Shown here piece after piece: positions 7,976-51,455 of a DNA stretch of 64,000 nucleotides (positions are counted from its first letter, which is position 1; every line of letters starts with the position of its first letter). The notes beneath the pieces are model-generated. The model did not search any database and was not told the DNA's origin. It saw only the letters and a program-made list of their open reading frames with translations. The DNA lies in sequence record OP380601.1; one strand, given 5' to 3'. A program made the translations under genes and the position numbers.

Positions 7976-8032
7976 TAAGAGACTTTGTAACCTACTCTAT
8001 AACTTTGTATAGGTTAAGTGTAAAGTCTCTTA
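7976..8032. repeat. nested inverted repeat
   Basis: TAAGAGACTTT/AAAGTCTCTTA (11 bp) enclosing TAACCTA/TAGGTTA (7 bp). Confidence 0.8.
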
Positions 8033-8048
8033 AAACGCTTTGTATGAG

Positions 8049-8114
8049 TTAGTTTCAAATGCAATCAAAGTATAAAGTTCTATAATATATTAATAGAAAC
8101 TTTATAATTAGAAA
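8049..8114 (+). repeat. 66-bp AT-rich palindromic element, copy 1
   Basis: 63/66 identical to 47133-47198. Confidence 0.9.
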
Positions 8115-8169
8115 ATTCGAGCTTGCGAGACGGCGAAGCCGTTACTCACTACGTTCGTAAAGAGGTTCT

Positions 8170-8553
8170 ATGTTAGAATGGTTTAAGAAAAAAGATATAC
8201 TGAGATTTTATATTGATTTGTCATATATTGATGGGTTGGGTTGTAAGGTTTTTGTCCATAGTGCGATTTTGTCAATAGAAATTGATAAGAGTTGCGACCT
8301 TAATAAGGTTAAGGAACTTATCGATATCAAGGCTAAGTGGTTTGCTCAGAACAATATCGTTTTCCAGAAAACTCTAAATGATAAATTGGTTATTCCACGT
8401 AGGGGCTTCGCTCAATTCTCTAGCGATAAGGTAGATCTCGTAAATTCTAATCGTAAATTTTGGAGTTATGAAGCGTATGATTTCTTCAGTGCTAAAACCA
8501 CATGGGGTATAGACTTACAAAATAAAATAAATGAGGCAATTAGAAATGGCTAA
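8170..8553 (+). CDS. hypothetical protein
   Basis: GAGG SD, 127 aa. Confidence 0.75.
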   Translation: MLEWFKKKDILRFYIDLSYIDGLGCKVFVHSAILSIEIDKSCDLNKVKELIDIKAKWFAQNNIVFQKTLNDKLVIPRRGFAQFSSDKVDLVNSNRKFWSYEAYDFFSAKTTWGIDLQNKINEAIRNG

Positions 8554-9564: not shown

Positions 9565-9601
9565 TTGACACATACATGTGGGTATGAGATACTACCCACA
9601 T
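9565..9601 (+). promoter_or_regulatory. early promoter with stem around -10
   Basis: TTGACA-17-GATACT; ATGTGGGTA-TGAGATAC-TACCCACAT. Confidence 0.85.
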
Positions 9602-11187: not shown

Positions 11188-11384
11188 TTAGCTTTATCTT
11201 GATGTTGATGTCGATTTACGTTATTGTATATTCTGTCTTGATTTTGAAAGGTTGTCATAAAAAATACTCACTACTCTGGCCTTTGGTTGCGTTTTGGGTA
11301 GTGGTCACTCTTATTCAGATTTGGATCGAAATGATTTGGGTAAAAATTCTGGATTTTAAAAATTATATTAGTAAAATTCGTTGA
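11184..11384 (+). CDS. small membrane protein
   Basis: Two hydrophobic helices. Confidence 0.65.
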   Translation: MISFILMLMSIYVIVYSVLILKGCHKKYSLLWPLVAFWVVVTLIQIWIEMIWVKILDFKNYISKIR

Positions 11385-11416
11385 CATATGATTGTGGGTA
11401 TGAGATATTACCCACA
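11381..11416 (+). promoter_or_regulatory. early promoter with stem around -10
   Basis: TTGACA-17-GATATT; TGTGGGTA-TGAGATAT-TACCCACA. Confidence 0.85.
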
Positions 11417-11440
11417 TAGACAACACATGAGGAATATATT

Positions 11441-11977
11441 ATGAATATTAAAATTACTACTTCTGGATTTTCTACCCTTGGTATGTTTGGGCAGAATCAC
11501 AGACTCATCGAAATTAACGGTGTTCCTTTGCTGTATACATGTACAGCTTATGACATAAATGATCCTCGGGTCTTTGTTCTGGAATCAAACCGTCAACTCA
11601 ACAATATTGTAAAACGTAATGTTGTGGTAGATACACAATGGGTTATGGATCATATTGATGAACTAACGGAAGAAGTAGAAAAACATAATGTTGTGGTAGA
11701 TACACAATGGGTTCTGGACCATATTGATGAACTCATTGAAGAAGCAGAAAAACATAATAGCGTCTATATCTATTGTGTTACTACTTCCGGTATGATTGTT
11801 CGTCCATCTAGAGAATCGTTCTCTTGGGGCGCCGCTAATTATATCTCCGGACATTCAACCGATACTTTCGATATGTCATCCGACCTATTTGTTAGTGTGA
11901 TGAAAGATATTATTGAGAATGACGAAATCACCCGATTCTATTTTGTGGATTCAATCACGGGAAAGGAACTCTCCTAA
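11441..11977 (+). CDS. hypothetical protein with 23-aa internal duplication
   Basis: NVVVDTQWVxDHIDELxEExEKH twice. Confidence 0.8.
   Translation: MNIKITTSGFSTLGMFGQNHRLIEINGVPLLYTCTAYDINDPRVFVLESNRQLNNIVKRNVVVDTQWVMDHIDELTEEVEKHNVVVDTQWVLDHIDELIEEAEKHNSVYIYCVTTSGMIVRPSRESFSWGAANYISGHSTDTFDMSSDLFVSVMKDIIENDEITRFYFVDSITGKELS
11618..11755 (+). repeat. 69-bp tandem duplication (2 copies)
   Basis: Units start at 11618 and 11687. Confidence 0.9.
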
Positions 11978-16740: not shown

Positions 16741-16956
16741 ATGTTTACTGTTACTATTAGTGAAACTGAAAAGATTTGTGTACATTCCAAATATGATTCT
16801 GGTACACACTTGGGCTTCATCGCAGGACTTCGTTCTAAAGGTGAATATACATCAGAAACCCCTGATGAGTTTTTGACCCCAGAACAAATCTCCAAGCTGG
16901 AAATGATTTTGTTGATGGAAATTAAAAAGATGGTTGACGAATACAAACGGGTATGA
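16741..16956 (+). CDS. hypothetical protein
   Basis: GAGG SD. Confidence 0.7.
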   Translation: MFTVTISETEKICVHSKYDSGTHLGFIAGLRSKGEYTSETPDEFLTPEQISKLEMILLMEIKKMVDEYKRV

Positions 16957-16978
16957 GACACTAGCTTTGTTGGAGACA
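16934..16978 (+). promoter_or_regulatory. early promoter, chimeric cassette
   Basis: TTGACG-17-GACACT; left half like 9565, right half like 21549. Confidence 0.7.
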
Positions 16979-17798: not shown

Positions 17799-18005
17799 AT
17801 GACTACTAAAGAAATTCTTCGTTCTGTATATGGTTCTTCTTCCTATTCAAATAACATCAAAGATTATGGTATTGTAGACCATCTGGATCACATAGAGATG
17901 GAACGTTCTATCTATGATGAAACTGGTGTTAACGTGTACAACACCCATGTGAAGGTTTCTACTGTTGCCGAACTCGAAGCACTGATAGAGAAAAATCGTT
18001 GTTGA
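17799..18005 (+). CDS. acyl-carrier-like small protein (weak)
   Basis: GIVDHLDHIEM..IYDETGV..KVSTVAELEALIE resembles the ACP fold but lacks the DSL serine. Confidence 0.35.
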   Translation: MTTKEILRSVYGSSSYSNNIKDYGIVDHLDHIEMERSIYDETGVNVYNTHVKVSTVAELEALIEKNRC

Positions 18006-18052
18006 CACCAATAATCAAGTTTGAGATACTAATCCCGTAGACAGAAACCCCC
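18002..18052 (+). promoter_or_regulatory. early promoter
   Basis: TTGACA-17-GATACT, same leader as 17731. Confidence 0.85.
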
Positions 18053-18075: not shown

Positions 18076-18294
18076 ATGACTGCTCAAATCTTCTTCTCTA
18101 CCCGTGCTAATGCTCGTCAGGCTTCTTTCGGTAAGATGACTGATAATGGCTCTACTGCTCCTAAGCGTTGGGCTCGGAGTGTTGAGGTAACTTCCACTGG
18201 CAACAAAACCCTGTCGGTCGGTAAAGGTTCCCGCAACAACGGTTACAAGGCCGTTACCATCATCACCAAGAAAACCAAAACTCTGGTTCACTAA
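18076..18294 (+). CDS. small basic protein, paralogue of 42515
   Basis: FFSTRANARQASFGKMTDNG..KRWAR..ITKKTKTLVH. Confidence 0.85.
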   Translation: MTAQIFFSTRANARQASFGKMTDNGSTAPKRWARSVEVTSTGNKTLSVGKGSRNNGYKAVTIITKKTKTLVH

Positions 18295-38080: not shown

Positions 38081-38358
38081 AACACACCTATCAAGTGGTT
38101 AGTGAAAAGACCGTAGAGATTACAGCTTTACAATTTGTAAAGAAATATCTTCGTCAAGTTAACGTGTGGAATGACGAATATGACTTCTATGTTGAAGACA
38201 CATTTGCGCGTGGGGATGGATTCTTGATTCGAAAATTTTCTCTACCTAAAAAGCTTTTCTCTATGGATATCACGAAGTTCAATCATGAAAATGACAGAAC
38301 TCAGGTTCTGATCCGACATATGGCTTCAGTCATTGAAGAAAATTATAAAAGTTATTGA
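38077..38358 (+). CDS. hypothetical protein
   Basis: Coupled. Confidence 0.7.
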   Translation: MKHTYQVVSEKTVEITALQFVKKYLRQVNVWNDEYDFYVEDTFARGDGFLIRKFSLPKKLFSMDITKFNHENDRTQVLIRHMASVIEENYKSY

Positions 38359-38383
38359 CCTATGTTTTTGGATATGAGATAGT
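38355..38383 (+). promoter_or_regulatory. early promoter
   Basis: TTGACC-17-GATAGT, ATCGAAAC leader. Confidence 0.8.
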
Positions 38384-38412
38384 GTCTATATCGAAACGCA
38401 GGAGATGACCCC

Positions 38413-42514: not shown

Positions 42515-42736
42515 ATGACTAACGTACAAGTTTTCTTCTCTACCCGCGCCGCCGCTCGTCAAGCTTCTTTCGGTAAGATGACTGATAATGGTACTACTTC
42601 CGAAAAGCGTTGGGCTCGTACTGTAACGGCCACAAGTAACGGTAACAAAACACTGTCTATCGCTTCAGGTGTTCGTAAGAATGGTTACAAGGACGTTACC
42701 GTAATCACCAAGAAAACCAAAACTCTGGTTCATTGA
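42515..42736 (+). CDS. small basic protein, paralogue of 18076
   Basis: FFSTRAAARQASFGKMTDNG..KRWAR..ITKKTKTLVH. Confidence 0.85.
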   Translation: MTNVQVFFSTRAAARQASFGKMTDNGTTSEKRWARTVTATSNGNKTLSIASGVRKNGYKDVTVITKKTKTLVH

Positions 42737-46418: not shown

Positions 46419-46679
46419 ATGATTATTCTTCGTATGAAAATCCATGAGTTTTACGAACTATATCTGCGATATCAAGAATGGGTTTGTGTTGCTAACCCTT
46501 CACAATACGCAATTGAAGCGGTATATAATCGAGCCATGCATCAGAAATATCTGAATGTTATGGAAGCTCAAGAGGTTCTGTCGTTTGTTACTTGGGTTGA
46601 AAACAACTCTTGTAAAGAAGATCTGGAAGTCCTCAAATCCACTATCCAATATATTAAAGGTGTATTAAATGCTGCTTGA
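46419..46679 (+). CDS. hypothetical protein
   Basis: GAGGA SD. Confidence 0.75.
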   Translation: MIILRMKIHEFYELYLRYQEWVCVANPSQYAIEAVYNRAMHQKYLNVMEAQEVLSFVTWVENNSCKEDLEVLKSTIQYIKGVLNAA

Positions 46680-47136
46680 GAAAATTAAGAAAGACCAAAT
46701 CGCCCTTCGTAAATCCGAAGAACGTACAACCCACGTTGGTAAAATGAAAATCAACGCCCTGACTACTCTGATTGGCGAAGCTTCTCCTTCCGGTCACAAT
46801 TCAGTAGTTTCTGATGAAGATGTACAGAAAATTGTTCGAAAGTTCGTGAAGAATCTAGATGAAACTCTGGAACAACTCGGGGTTGATACCACAATTACCA
46901 GCTTTGAAAAAGCCGTTGATGTGTTGAAAGAATGCTCTAAAATCTCCATGCTTCTAATCGAGCGCCAGATGTATATGAGTTACCTGCCACAAGTATTTGA
47001 TGAAACCCAAATCAAAGAAGTGGTTGATTCTATGCAGGGCGCAAATATCGGTCAAATCATGGGAGCCTGCAAGAAAGCCGCTACCTCTAAAGGTATGATG
47101 TTTGATGGTTCCCTAGTCAAAAAAGTGATTGGTTAG
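46669..47136 (+). CDS. YqeY/GatB-like protein
   Basis: LEKIKKDQIALRK..LTTLIGE..SDEDVQKIVRK..YLPQ..NIGQIMG. Confidence 0.8.
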   Translation: MLLEKIKKDQIALRKSEERTTHVGKMKINALTTLIGEASPSGHNSVVSDEDVQKIVRKFVKNLDETLEQLGVDTTITSFEKAVDVLKECSKISMLLIERQMYMSYLPQVFDETQIKEVVDSMQGANIGQIMGACKKAATSKGMMFDGSLVKKVIG

Positions 47137-47198
47137 TTTCAAGTGTAATCAAAGTATAAAGTTCTATAATATATTAATAGAGACTTTATAATTAGAAA
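47133..47198 (+). repeat. 66-bp AT-rich palindromic element, copy 2
   Basis: 63/66 identical to 8049-8114. Confidence 0.9.
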
Positions 47199-47247
47199 TG
47201 GTGAGTCGTAGACGAACACCCGTTAGGGGCTCTCTATCGCTCGCCAT

Positions 47248-47263
47248 TTGATTTATAAATCAA
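47248..47263. repeat. perfect 16-bp palindrome TTGATTTATAAATCAA
   Basis: Self-complementary, intergenic. Confidence 0.85.
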
Positions 47264-47326: not shown

Positions 47327-47572
47327 ATGGTTTCTATCGAACAGTTCATTAATATTAAAAAAGCTGATGGTTATACACAACAACCGGATCTAGATGGTTG
47401 TGTCGTATTGACTATGAAGGTTAAGGATTGGGTTTACTCTTTTCATGTAAACCGTGATACAAAAAATGTTGAGTATCGTGTTACAAAACCCCTTGACACT
47501 CAGGCTATGAATATATACAATCTCAATAATGTTCTGGTAAAGAACGGTGTATTTTTCATTCGTAACGTATGA
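47327..47572 (+). CDS. hypothetical protein
   Basis: GAGG SD. Confidence 0.75.
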   Translation: MVSIEQFINIKKADGYTQQPDLDGCVVLTMKVKDWVYSFHVNRDTKNVEYRVTKPLDTQAMNIYNLNNVLVKNGVFFIRNV

Positions 47573-47590: not shown

Positions 47591-47995
47591 ATGAAAAAGA
47601 ATTTGACAACTAAAGAGATTATTAAGCATGGGGCGGTTGTTGTTGGTAACTTTACTGGGATCCATCTTCAAGAGACTGGGGATATTCTTAAAGAAGGGTT
47701 CTACTTCATTGCAGCACCGAACAGCTCGGTTGTGTATGCTACCCATGTAGGGAACCAACAACGCCGTAGGGGCTTTGGTGAGACTATGATCCGTCTACGT
47801 ACCCCACGAACCGGACAGGCCCGAGAAGTAAAAGACTATCTTTTGAGTGGAAAGAGTGTTAAACTGTATTTCTTGAAGTTTAGTCAAGTCCGGAACCTTC
47901 TTGATTTGGAAGAATATGGACAAATGAACAACGGTCATGAATTGATCGGTAAGGTTCGAAATAAATTTATCATTCACGGTCGTATGGCTTCGTAA
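47591..47995 (+). CDS. ndd: nucleoid disruption protein
   Basis: Resembles T4 Ndd (GAVVVG..GFYF..HVGNQ..RRGF); upstream of gene 52 as in T4. Confidence 0.8.
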   Translation: MKKNLTTKEIIKHGAVVVGNFTGIHLQETGDILKEGFYFIAAPNSSVVYATHVGNQQRRRGFGETMIRLRTPRTGQAREVKDYLLSGKSVKLYFLKFSQVRNLLDLEEYGQMNNGHELIGKVRNKFIIHGRMAS

Positions 47996-48230: not shown

Positions 48231-49583
48231 ATGAAAATAGTTGAACGTTCTATTACAAGTTATATTGATAACGAAGCAAAAGAATTTACTTTCTACGTTA
48301 TTGTAAATCGGGCTCTACCATCATTGATTGATGGTCTAAAGCCATCCCAACGATTTGTTTTATATTCAGCGATCAAACATGCCAGTCTTGATTTCAAGAA
48401 AAACGCTTATTTGTGTGGTGTATTGTCTGATTATGGCTACCCCCACGGGGAAACTTCAGCTTTTGATGTTGCTTCAAAAATGGCAACTGATTACGCCAAC
48501 AACTATCCAGTGTTGGAAGGTAGAGGAAACTTCGGTTCCCGTGCTAATCGAGATGCAGCAGAACCGCGATATATTTTTTGTAAGTTGAATAGCAACTTCC
48601 ATGATATTTTCAAAGATGAGGATCTACTTTTAAAGAATGAAATCGTTTCATATTCCGTTCCTAAATTTTACCTTCCTGTTATTCCATTTGTTTTGTTGAA
48701 CGGGATTACTGGTATTGCATCAGCATACGCCACCAATATTCCACCACACGATATTCATAGCGTTATCGATGAATGTGTTAAATATGTAAAAACTGGGAAA
48801 TGTGATAATCCTCAAGTCAAATATCCGTCTTTCATTGGTAAGGTAAACACACCAGAAGATGGACAATGGACGAATGAGGGTGTTTATGAATTGCAAGGTA
48901 AAACTAAGCTAACAATTAAAGAAATCCCAGTTAGCTATGACCGTATTAAATATGTATCTACACTAAACAAATTGATTGATTCGGATCAGATTGTCGGGTA
49001 TGATGAAATTGAGGGTGAGGGTGATTTCACTTTCCGAGTGACGTTGAAACGGGATTTTGATACATCTCACGAAAACATAATGAATAAGTTTGATCTACGT
49101 GAGAATATTAATCCGAATTTAGTTACCATCGGACCAAATTCAAATATGGTAACCCGAGAAATGGATTTGAGAATTTATAAACATTCTCGCGAATTGATCG
49201 CGGACTTTATAAATTATCGACTTCCTATTGTAGATCAACGTATCAAAAATATGATTGATACGTTGACCAAAAAAATTCCGGAACTTAAAGCAAGGGTTGA
49301 ATTTATTCGCCTAGCTCGCGATGGTAAGGTCAATTTTAATCAACCAAAGAAAGCTATGATAAAGCAGGTTGAAGGATTGATGGAGCCAGAATTGGCGGTA
49401 TTTTCTGATAAAGTTGTCGGTATGCCAATATTCAACATGACCGATGATGAAATTGCACGTCTTAATAAAGAATATGAACAAGCGATTTCAGACCTTAATT
49501 ACTGGAAGAATACAAACTCCAAGAAAGAGTATCTGAAAGATCTATCTACACTTAAAAATGGGCTTAAGAAAAATGACATTTGA
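48231..49583 (+). CDS. 52: DNA topoisomerase II medium subunit
   Basis: NRALPSLIDGLKPSQRFVLY, PHGETS, GNFGS..AAEPRY active-site Tyr. Confidence 0.95.
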   Translation: MKIVERSITSYIDNEAKEFTFYVIVNRALPSLIDGLKPSQRFVLYSAIKHASLDFKKNAYLCGVLSDYGYPHGETSAFDVASKMATDYANNYPVLEGRGNFGSRANRDAAEPRYIFCKLNSNFHDIFKDEDLLLKNEIVSYSVPKFYLPVIPFVLLNGITGIASAYATNIPPHDIHSVIDECVKYVKTGKCDNPQVKYPSFIGKVNTPEDGQWTNEGVYELQGKTKLTIKEIPVSYDRIKYVSTLNKLIDSDQIVGYDEIEGEGDFTFRVTLKRDFDTSHENIMNKFDLRENINPNLVTIGPNSNMVTREMDLRIYKHSRELIADFINYRLPIVDQRIKNMIDTLTKKIPELKARVEFIRLARDGKVNFNQPKKAMIKQVEGLMEPELAVFSDKVVGMPIFNMTDDEIARLNKEYEQAISDLNYWKNTNSKKEYLKDLSTLKNGLKKNDI

Positions 49584-49998
49584 TAATGATGTATTTGTAA
49601 ATTTATATAAAAAAGAAAGTAGTTTGATTCATGGATGGAGAAATTTCATCATATCATCTTCTATTATTCTTATTATGGCAATTATTCTAATTGCTAATGG
49701 TGTTTTATACCCATATACATTCTTGTTCGCTGCCGCAACGATCTATTCGCTGGTAGATTTGATTATGTATCGTCAATTCGGAAAATTGCGAGAGATTCAA
49801 TTTGGCCCTAAATATAGTCACCCGTATTTATTGAAAATGATGAAATCTAAATCTCTAGATTCAAATAATATCAATAATATGGATAACTCGGAAATAAAAA
49901 GTCTGGCGAATCGTTCGATGGTTATTCTTACATTAGTTGACATTATTTCCGTATTTTTGATTGCATCTGGTATTCACTATGTAATTAATCTATTCTAA
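49573..49998 (+). CDS. membrane protein
   Basis: Three TM segments. Confidence 0.75.
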   Translation: MTFDNDVFVNLYKKESSLIHGWRNFIISSSIILIMAIILIANGVLYPYTFLFAAATIYSLVDLIMYRQFGKLREIQFGPKYSHPYLLKMMKSKSLDSNNINNMDNSEIKSLANRSMVILTLVDIISVFLIASGIHYVINLF

Positions 49999-51161: not shown

Positions 51162-51455
51162 ATGAGCAATAAGATTGAAGTCCTTAAAGATATTGTGGCA
51201 ACTGCATCGATTCTAATCAAATTTGGTAGAGATGATATTCTAGATACACAACGAGGGTTTGTTGACTTTCTATCAGAGGCTGGATTTACCACCCCATCAG
51301 GAAAACCTTTAACTATTCAGAACTTTCGTGTAATGGTGAAAAGCCTTAAACCTTCCCAAATTAAAGATATATTCCAAGAATTTGACGCCGGTCGAATGTA
51401 CGATATGATTGATTGTATGATATCTCAACATCCAGACTTGGAACTAGAAAGTTAA
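51162..51455 (+). CDS. asiA: anti-sigma70 factor
   Basis: ASILIKFGRDDI..FVDFLSEAG..G.PL..NFRVMV matches T4 AsiA. Confidence 0.9.
   Translation: MSNKIEVLKDIVATASILIKFGRDDILDTQRGFVDFLSEAGFTTPSGKPLTIQNFRVMVKSLKPSQIKDIFQEFDAGRMYDMIDCMISQHPDLELES

Follow-up and report, generated by a model that had tools for sequence, protein, structure and literature searches.

A repeated non-coding cassette with outward-facing -10-like hexamers at six sites in T4-like Aeromonas phages: a candidate divergent promoter

Introduction

What does a T4-like phage use a non-coding sequence for that it carries in several near-identical copies beside unrelated genes? The question is raised by Aeromonas phage avDM6 (OP380601.1; 233,966 bp), which belongs to the Straboviridae, Emmerichvirinae, Ishigurovirus. 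Aeromonas phages with genomes of about 230 kb are under development against fish pathogens, and most of their genes are unannotated. The window examined here is identical (100%) to the first 64,000 nt of the avDM6 record and has a G+C content of 36.5%. A preliminary description, made from these letters alone, reported an AT-rich palindrome of 66 bp that occurs twice and is followed each time by a GC-rich, folded stretch. It was proposed to be an origin of replication, a primosome site or a binding site for a phage protein. The literature searched for the cassette held no description of the element.

Comparable elements have been described in T4-type phages. The firing mode of most T4 origins is an open question, and these origins have no sequence in common (Kreuzer and Brister 2010, PMC3016281). 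Moreover, T4-like genomes contain repeated units called PeSL and PmSL (Arbiol et al. 2010, PMC2839356; Comeau et al. 2014, PMC4122927). In a PeSL, a stem-loop directly precedes an early promoter with -35 and -10 boxes, and a Shine-Dalgarno sequence and a start codon form the 3' end; PeSLs number in the tens and are concentrated in hyperplastic regions, beside indels (Comeau et al. 2014, PMC4122927).

Copies and distribution of the cassette

A repeat search of the window recovered positions 8048-8114 and 47132-47198 as a match of 64/67 nt (96% identity), both on the plus strand and 39,084 bp apart; the 63/66 match from position 8049 that had been noticed before is the same one. With up to three mismatches allowed, the 21-nt left part matches twice in the window as compared to 0.01 matches expected by chance, and a search of the window for extra half-sites gave none above chance. 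Both copies are real, but they are only part of the set: by searching the whole record, it was found that avDM6 contains seven copies of a non-coding cassette of about 115 nt at six sites (Table 1). Moreover, copy 2 is not strictly intergenic, as had been assumed for both, because its first 5 nt are also the final ones of the gene before it (46669-47136). In the Ishigurovirus genomes, the copies c3 and c4 of site 3 are inverted and face each other.

Table 1 Window, cassette parts in copies 1 and 2, and the seven cassette copies in avDM6
Feature	Position	Strand	Remarks
Window	1-64000		Aeromonas phage avDM6, OP380601.1
Copy 1, part F	8048..8069	+	flank GTTAGTTTCAAATGCAATCAAA; small internal dyad TTTCAnnTGAAA
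Copy 1, part D	8065..8112	.	AT-rich dyad, core about 89% A+T; dyad search
Copy 1, leftward-facing -10-like hexamer	8069..8074	-	TATACT; predicted start near 8062
Copy 1, rightward-facing -10-like hexamer	8103..8108	+	TATAAT; predicted start near 8115
Copy 1, part G	8117..8157	+	block order b-a-c-a'-b': CGAGC, GCGAG, hairpin, CTCAC, GTTCG
Copy 1, mini-hairpin	8130-8142	+	ACGGC-GAA-GCCGT; read in sequence
Copy 2, part F	47132..47153	+	first 5 nt overlap end of gene 46669-47136
Copy 2, part D	47149..47196	.	AT dyad; dyad search
Copy 2, leftward-facing hexamer	47153-47158	-	TATACT; predicted start near 47146
Copy 2, rightward-facing hexamer	47187-47192	+	TATAAT; predicted start near 47199
Copy 2, part G	47198-47247	+	variant, nested 50-nt hairpin: GGTGAG...CGAAC...CCC-gtta-GGG...CTCGCC
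Site 1, copy c1	8048	+	whole-record search
Site 2, copy c2	47132	+	whole-record search
Site 3, copy c3	78491	+	whole-record search
Site 3, copy c4	78698	-	whole-record search
Site 5, copy c5	121568	-	whole-record search
Site 6, copy c6	145430	+	whole-record search
Site 7, copy c7	188405	-	whole-record search

The search of the genome and its relatives also established that the element is conserved, with the same six syntenic sites being occupied in three phage lineages. Phages 65 and 65.2 are about 86% identical to avDM6 around the cassette locus, and phage 65 carries the same set of seven copies. The Ceceduovirus (CC2-like) phages and ZPAH1/Aswh_1 are more remote from avDM6 than phage 65. Of these, CC2, AS-sw, AS-yj and G2 have six sites each, and every one of them has a syntenic counterpart in avDM6. 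In ZPAH1/Aswh_1, the six sites contain seven copies, two of which form an overlapping inverted pair at site 6; four of the sites were paired with those of avDM6 by flanking sequence and two by genome order. For AS-zj and AsSzw2, just four clear copies per record were detected because Ns and a deletion lie inside the cassettes. Indeed, in NC_048673 (AS-zj) and MN871441 (AsSzw2) the Ns and deletions fall exactly within cassette copies, which suggests assembly trouble at the repeat. In public runs, the contigs of related phages break off at the cassette, where they pile up about 10-fold, in keeping with a multicopy repeat. No RNA run that contains the sequence was found among the public runs. IMG/VR and the metagenome collection, when scanned by pattern, gave genuine matches to phage-65-like and CC2-like phages only, among them two phage-65-like contigs, and the remaining 15 metagenome pattern matches were dismissed as chance.

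Anatomy of the cassette

The alignment of 32 distinct copies revealed three parts, which are designated F, D and G from left to right. Part F comprises 21 nt with near-invariant columns (consensus TAGTWTCAnnTGnAATCAAA). Part D is the AT-rich dyad, the arms of which were found in copy 1 (8065-8079/8098-8112) as well as in copy 2 (47149-47162/47183-47196), in agreement with the near-perfect palindrome reported earlier. It is among the most AT-rich 40-mers of the window, and in copy 1 it ties for the lowest G+C count (4/40). As single-stranded DNA, it folds with -6.7 kcal/mol (z = -3.3 relative to shuffles). The conserved blocks of D are an outer TATA on each side, the inner boxes TCTATA and ATAGA, and the right end CTATAATTAGA. 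Phage 65 has been reported to lack the T4 endonuclease VII (gp49) and to have a substitute nuclease instead (PMC2993671), and this swap may matter for how the phage copes with long AT dyads. In avDM6, the two arms have complementary middle blocks (AAGTT/AACTT), whereas those of ZPAH1 are not complementary (AAGTTT/AGATC). Therefore, selection is not keeping a perfect hairpin or cruciform, and the idea that D is selected as a cruciform or perfect dyad is weakened.

Both ends of D carry a -10-like hexamer facing outward, 28 bp apart in Ishigurovirus and 30 bp apart in the other lineages. In 54 copies from nine genomes, the right hexamer on the top strand reads TATAAT (48), TACAGT (3), TATAGT (2) or TACACT (1), and the left one on the bottom strand TATAAT (21), TATACT (16), TATAGT (14) or TATATT (3). 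All differences are confined to positions 3-5, and both hexamers are TAnnnT in 54/54 copies. In the sigma-70 -10 element TATAAT, A2 and T6 are essentially invariant and the middle positions are tolerant; every one of the outward hexamers conforms to this pattern. An inner TATAAT-like hexamer drops its final T in most copies (TATAAG in 38, TATTAA in 4), and in two lineages it is TATAAG. A symmetric version, F-D-F', exists at ZPAH1 site 6, in addition to the inverted pair at Ishigurovirus site 3. In this pair, c3 has a degenerate rightward hexamer (TACACT/TACAGT), which would fire against the direction of the genes and into the partner copy. Reading the arms as late promoters (TATAAATA) was rejected because the octamer varies (TATAAAGT, TATAAAAT, TATAGATC).

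The GC-rich part G is composed of the blocks a (GTGAG) and b (CGAAC), a small hairpin c, and the blocks a' (CTCAC) and b' (GTTCG). The conserved unit stops at CGTTCG, past which the sites diverge. The usual order a-b-c-a'-b' is interleaved and pseudoknot-like. At ZPAH1 sites 2 and 5, the order is permuted to b-a-c-b'-a', yet still interleaved, and a nested order is found at sites 1 and 2 of Ishigurovirus and at site 2 of CC2. The versions of G at site 2 and at Ishigurovirus site 3 are quite different. G is separated from the -10 hexamer by a linker that varies by 2-9 nt, and almost all sites have it to the right of D, even those without a following gene. The pairing of hairpin c is kept by co-variation across at least five stems (CGGC, CGCC, CGCG(C), CCC and CGGGC), the loops are free (gaa, ttc, aaa, ttt, tac, tcc, tgc, gta and gga), and two G-U pairs occur, both on the top strand. 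Blocks a and b are invariant and show no co-variation; they are uninformative on pairing because they never vary.

The folding that had been described behind both copies was confirmed for copy 2, whose hairpin (RNA, -24.5 kcal/mol, z = -4.6) is kept in phage 65, but the whole GC stretch of copy 1 folds no better than shuffled sequences (z = -1.1 as RNA and -0.2 as DNA). For the nested folds of G, this is the case in two of four copies. The copy-2 hairpin is directly followed by a perfect 16-bp AT palindrome (47248-47263, TTGATTTATAAATCAA), which is also kept in phage 65. The mini-hairpin of copy 1 is present where it had been placed. It had been linked to the very stable d(GCGAAGC) hairpin and to primosome sites. 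Mini-hairpins of the type d(GCGAAGC) and single-strand initiation (primosome) signals are features of phiX174/G4-type origins, and double-stranded T4-like phages are not known to use such signals. Copy 1 indeed has GCGAAGC inside ACGGCGAAGCCGT, but the GAA loop and the stem sequence vary among the copies. The cassette hairpin is thus kept as a structure and not as that motif, and the primosome idea was abandoned.

Gene context of the six sites

At sites 1, 2 and 5, the cassette is co-oriented with the genes, and a Shine-Dalgarno sequence and an ATG are located downstream of G. For instance, the Shine-Dalgarno sequence of site 1 (8160-8166) directly follows G and the ATG is at 8170, within about 10 nt. 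Copy 2 had been placed just upstream of ndd; a gene of 81 codons (47327-47572) intervenes before the Ndd-like gene (47591-47995). The data do not support a special link to ndd: copy 2 represents one of six sites with unrelated neighbours. At site 5, the adjoining downstream gene encodes a SLOG/DprA-like protein and not UvsY, and the analogy to T4 oriF by position was dropped on this ground.

The cassette of site 3 in the CC2-like phages has the baseplate hub gene 73 nt to its left, and in CC2 a hairpin is present within about 20 nt past G. At site 6, the cassette is located between a gp34-like fibre gene and a SegE-like GIY-YIG homing gene. Behind the cassette come an ordinary TTTACA-17-TATGAT promoter and a frame of 38 codons (about 145611-145727 of the genome), which is unannotated, has its own Shine-Dalgarno sequence and encodes a hydrophobic C-terminus. 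The cassette of site 7 opposes the genes, and the ATG of the next gene is on the other strand, 15 nt (avDM6) or 11 nt (CC2) beyond F; the leftward hexamer would serve this divergent gene. A rightward transcript would have no gene to serve at sites 3, 6 and 7. Family scans of the small genes beside the cassettes for DNA-binding domains found nothing.

Hairpins upstream of the cassette can be read from the sequence at sites 1, 5 and 6. The terminator scan called only the one at site 6, for the opposite (leftward) strand, and none at sites 1 and 5. At site 1, the upstream gene is separated from copy 1 by a nested hairpin (7990-8036; GAGACTTT...AACCTA...TAGGTT...AAAGTCTC), which phage 65 has kept and which may act as a terminator that lacks a U-run. 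In the scan for intrinsic terminators, which consist of a GC hairpin with a U-run right behind it, the reverse strand of G was flagged at site 5 only, with hairpin c and a T-rich tail, and G was not flagged at sites 1, 2, 6 and 7.

The window contains further repeats. The ordinary early promoters belong to a different class (TTGACA-N14-TGnGATACT). Many ordinary PeSL-like early cassettes of this type are present (repeat families D2-D8), at 9565-9601, 11381-11417, 16934-16970, 18002-18038 and 38355-38391 and in the families D3-D8, and their spacer frequently contains a stem. Another class, GCTTGTCA...TGTTATTATAC, also differs from the cassette studied here. A tandem repeat of 69 nt (11611-11748, 90% identical) is situated inside a coding region. 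Moreover, a direct repeat of 206 nt (18085-18290 and 42527-42732, 79% identity, 24 kb apart) has similar promoter/Shine-Dalgarno cassettes in front of both copies and probably represents a pair of paralogous small genes.

Concerted evolution and spacing

Orthologous copies of avDM6 and phage 65 are 97% identical as compared to about 86% for their flanks. Within one genome, paralogous copies share 91.5% identity in Ishigurovirus and 88% in CC2. Across genera, pairs of copies are 82% identical, no matter whether they come from the same site. Therefore, the copies evolve in concert, which would be due either to conversion or to the tracking of a common factor.

The gaps between the six sites are 39, 31, 43, 24, 43 and 54 kb. 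When six intergenic gaps were drawn at random, an equally large minimum gap occurred in 0.7% of the trials and an equally small standard deviation in 0.2%. The sites are thus more even than expected by chance (P about 0.002-0.009). However, the spacing counts as one observation because the lineages share the arrangement by descent. Three sites are 0-3 kb from strand-switch points, and half of the six are found in late/core gene regions. The orientation of the cassette is independent of the neighbouring genes. Over the whole genome, GC and AT skew track the gene strand only, and no shift was visible at the sites inside co-directional blocks.

A divergent promoter as the best reading

The promoter-like outward TAnnnT hexamers are the strongest sequence signal in the cassette, and the preliminary description had proposed no promoter. 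The cassette may best be read as a compact, factor-dependent divergent promoter, to which we assign a probability of roughly 0.45. A two-way promoter with a folded leader is the best fit to the TAnnnT pattern of both hexamers, the genes starting to the left or to the right, the linker of variable length and the co-variation in the hairpin. From the anatomy, the conservation and the gene positions, we infer transcription, its start sites, its timing and a factor. Host RNA polymerase together with a phage factor would use each cassette via the two outward -10 elements, 28-30 bp apart within D. The rightward one would fire into G, which would fold at the 5' end of the RNA, and the leftward one through the conserved flank F. 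These would be -35-independent promoters of a 'middle type', since a -35 box is missing and the phage encodes a homologue of the anti-sigma factor AsiA (51162-51455). A consensus scan for a TTGACA-like -35 box 16-18 bp upstream of the outward hexamers found none, so that they do not form canonical sigma-70 promoters. The putative factor would read either the inner boxes (TCTATA/ATAGA) or F.

Several features agree with this. The linker of varying length, the stem changes of hairpin c, its free loops and its G-U pairs fit a transcribed leader. The non-complementary middle blocks of the ZPAH1/Aswh_1 arms look as expected for promoter spacers. The degenerate hexamer of c3 is the wrongly directed one and may likewise be counted for a promoter, as were the hairpins before the cassette at sites 1, 5 and 6, of which only the site-6 one was called by the scan, and on the opposite strand. 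A scan of the gaps at sites 1, 2 and 7 found no canonical sigma-70 promoter, which was also counted in favour, as was the different class of the ordinary early promoters.

Other results speak against a promoter. With a simple sigma-70 weight matrix, no cassette promoter was clearly above background. The best consistent match, formed by the inner hexamer and a weak nTGnAA as -35, scored 6.4-11 (background mean 6.1, 95th percentile 9.4). Pfam searches with MotCF and MotA_activ did not find MotA in avDM6 and CC2 (for ZPAH1, MotA_activ only), although such searches can overlook divergent homologues. Nor did family scans of the genes that separate gp52 from asiA reveal a MotA-like protein. A gene of 141 codons (49573-49998) that adjoins the gp52 topoisomerase gene has no family match. 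Moreover, the conserved 115 nt are far above what a promoter needs, and even spacing would be unexpected of gene-specific promoters. Together with the rightward RNA that lacks a gene at three sites, these two points favour a role at the DNA level, such as that of an origin.

Alternative functions

The cassettes could thus be origins that share one sequence, with D as the unwinding element. Transcription from the -10 elements, or a phage initiator bound to F, would open D or leave an R-loop primer, as at T4 oriF and oriG. This is possible, although we consider it less probable than the divergent promoter, with which it is compatible. Back-to-back promoters would drive negative supercoils into D and thereby open it for the replisome. 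Of the functions first proposed, an origin or a protein-binding site indeed fits the synteny, the conservation, the even spacing and the meltable AT core, but so does a site for RNA polymerase. In favour of origins are the spacing (P = 0.007 for the minimum gap and 0.002 for the standard deviation against random intergenic gaps), the orientation independent of adjacent genes, the concerted evolution of the entire 115 nt (88-92% between paralogues, 82% across genera), the AT-richness of D and the symmetric versions at ZPAH1 site 6 and Ishigurovirus site 3. T4 oriF (uvsY) and oriG (gene 34) are also units of about 100 bp, with a sigma-70-type -10 lacking a normal -35 and with an A+T-rich stretch; moreover, T4 has several origins per genome, some of them (oriE/F/G) near strand-switch points, as are three of the cassette sites (Kreuzer and Brister 2010, PMC3016281). 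However, the T4 origins have no common motif, whereas the cassette has one sequence at all sites. The A+T-rich element of oriF and oriG lies downstream of the promoter (PMC3016281), but that of the cassette lies between or upstream of the divergent -10 boxes and is followed downstream by GC-rich DNA, which is not the arrangement of a downstream unwinding element. Likewise, oriF and oriG have a MotA box at -30, whereas the cassette shares with this middle-mode promoter only the -10: a TGCTT box was not found at -30, nor was MotA in the Pfam searches of avDM6 and CC2. Origins of the oriF/oriG type also sustain the replication of plasmids upon infection and have a persistent R-loop. No initiator gene is known, the skew does not shift at sites in co-directional blocks, and the positions inherited across three lineages reduce the spacing to a single observation.

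It is improbable that the cassette is a PeSL-like terminator-plus-promoter unit whose main evolutionary role is that of a recombination point. In such a unit, the bottom strand of G would terminate incoming transcription and the leftward -10 would restart it. Indeed, along the gene strand of sites 3 and 7, a gene, the reverse complement of G, the promoter and the next gene succeed one another, and hairpin c with its T-rich tail was flagged on the bottom strand at site 5. Copies within one genome stay alike and evolve in concert, and such short, conserved and repeated intergenic units of promoter and stem-loop are known from T4-like genomes (Arbiol et al. 2010, PMC2839356; Comeau et al. 2014, PMC4122927). 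However, PeSLs have -35 and -10 boxes 17 bp apart and an upstream stem-loop, whereas the cassette has no -35, two outward -10s in a dyad plus a 21-nt flank, and, at sites 1, 2 and 5, a hairpin that follows the gene-facing promoter. Moreover, PeSLs are present in many copies near indels, whereas the cassette occupies six fixed, even sites that are syntenic in three lineages, lie half in core late regions and are without indels, and it is found in either orientation relative to the genes. In the CC2 lineage, the T-tail on G is weak. Thus, neither the structure nor the copy number and indel association of PeSLs was found, and membership was rejected on the missing -35, the copy number and the fixed positions. 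Similarly doubtful is that the functional product is a small structured, pseudoknot-like G RNA of about 45-90 nt, made at every site and acting as a decoy, a regulator or a protective 5' cap structure, with F and D merely being its promoter. This would explain why G is to the right of D even where no gene follows, why the interleaving survives the permutation at ZPAH1 sites 2 and 5 and why hairpin c co-varies, and the hairpin just past G at CC2 site 3 agrees with it. By contrast, a search of six cassette loci against Rfam 15 with E up to 1 gave no match, the invariant blocks a and b never co-vary, half of the four nested folds do not beat shuffles, G is quite different at site 2 and at Ishigurovirus site 3, and there are no clear terminators after sites 6 and 7. 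By far the least likely function is that of a MITE-like mobile element or a homing-endonuclease target that has spread to intergenic sites. The cassette is a multicopy intergenic repeat, and the SegE-like GIY-YIG gene adjoins copy 6, but this homing gene is found beside one site only. As the same six sites are occupied in three lineages, the element has not moved recently. Moreover, terminal inverted repeats and target duplications are absent, and the IMG/VR and metagenome scans match these phages only.

Conclusions

That the cassette is a conserved cis-acting element is supported in general terms by its sequence, and it provides a practical landmark for annotating 230-kb Aeromonas phages. If it is a promoter only, it would represent a new AsiA-era class in phages that seemingly lack MotA, and would point to an activator. 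If, as is possible but less probable than the divergent promoter, a group of T4-like Aeromonas phages has six evenly spaced, transcription-activated origins sharing one sequence, the cassette would offer a defined and mutable sequence for probing the link between transcription and origin firing.
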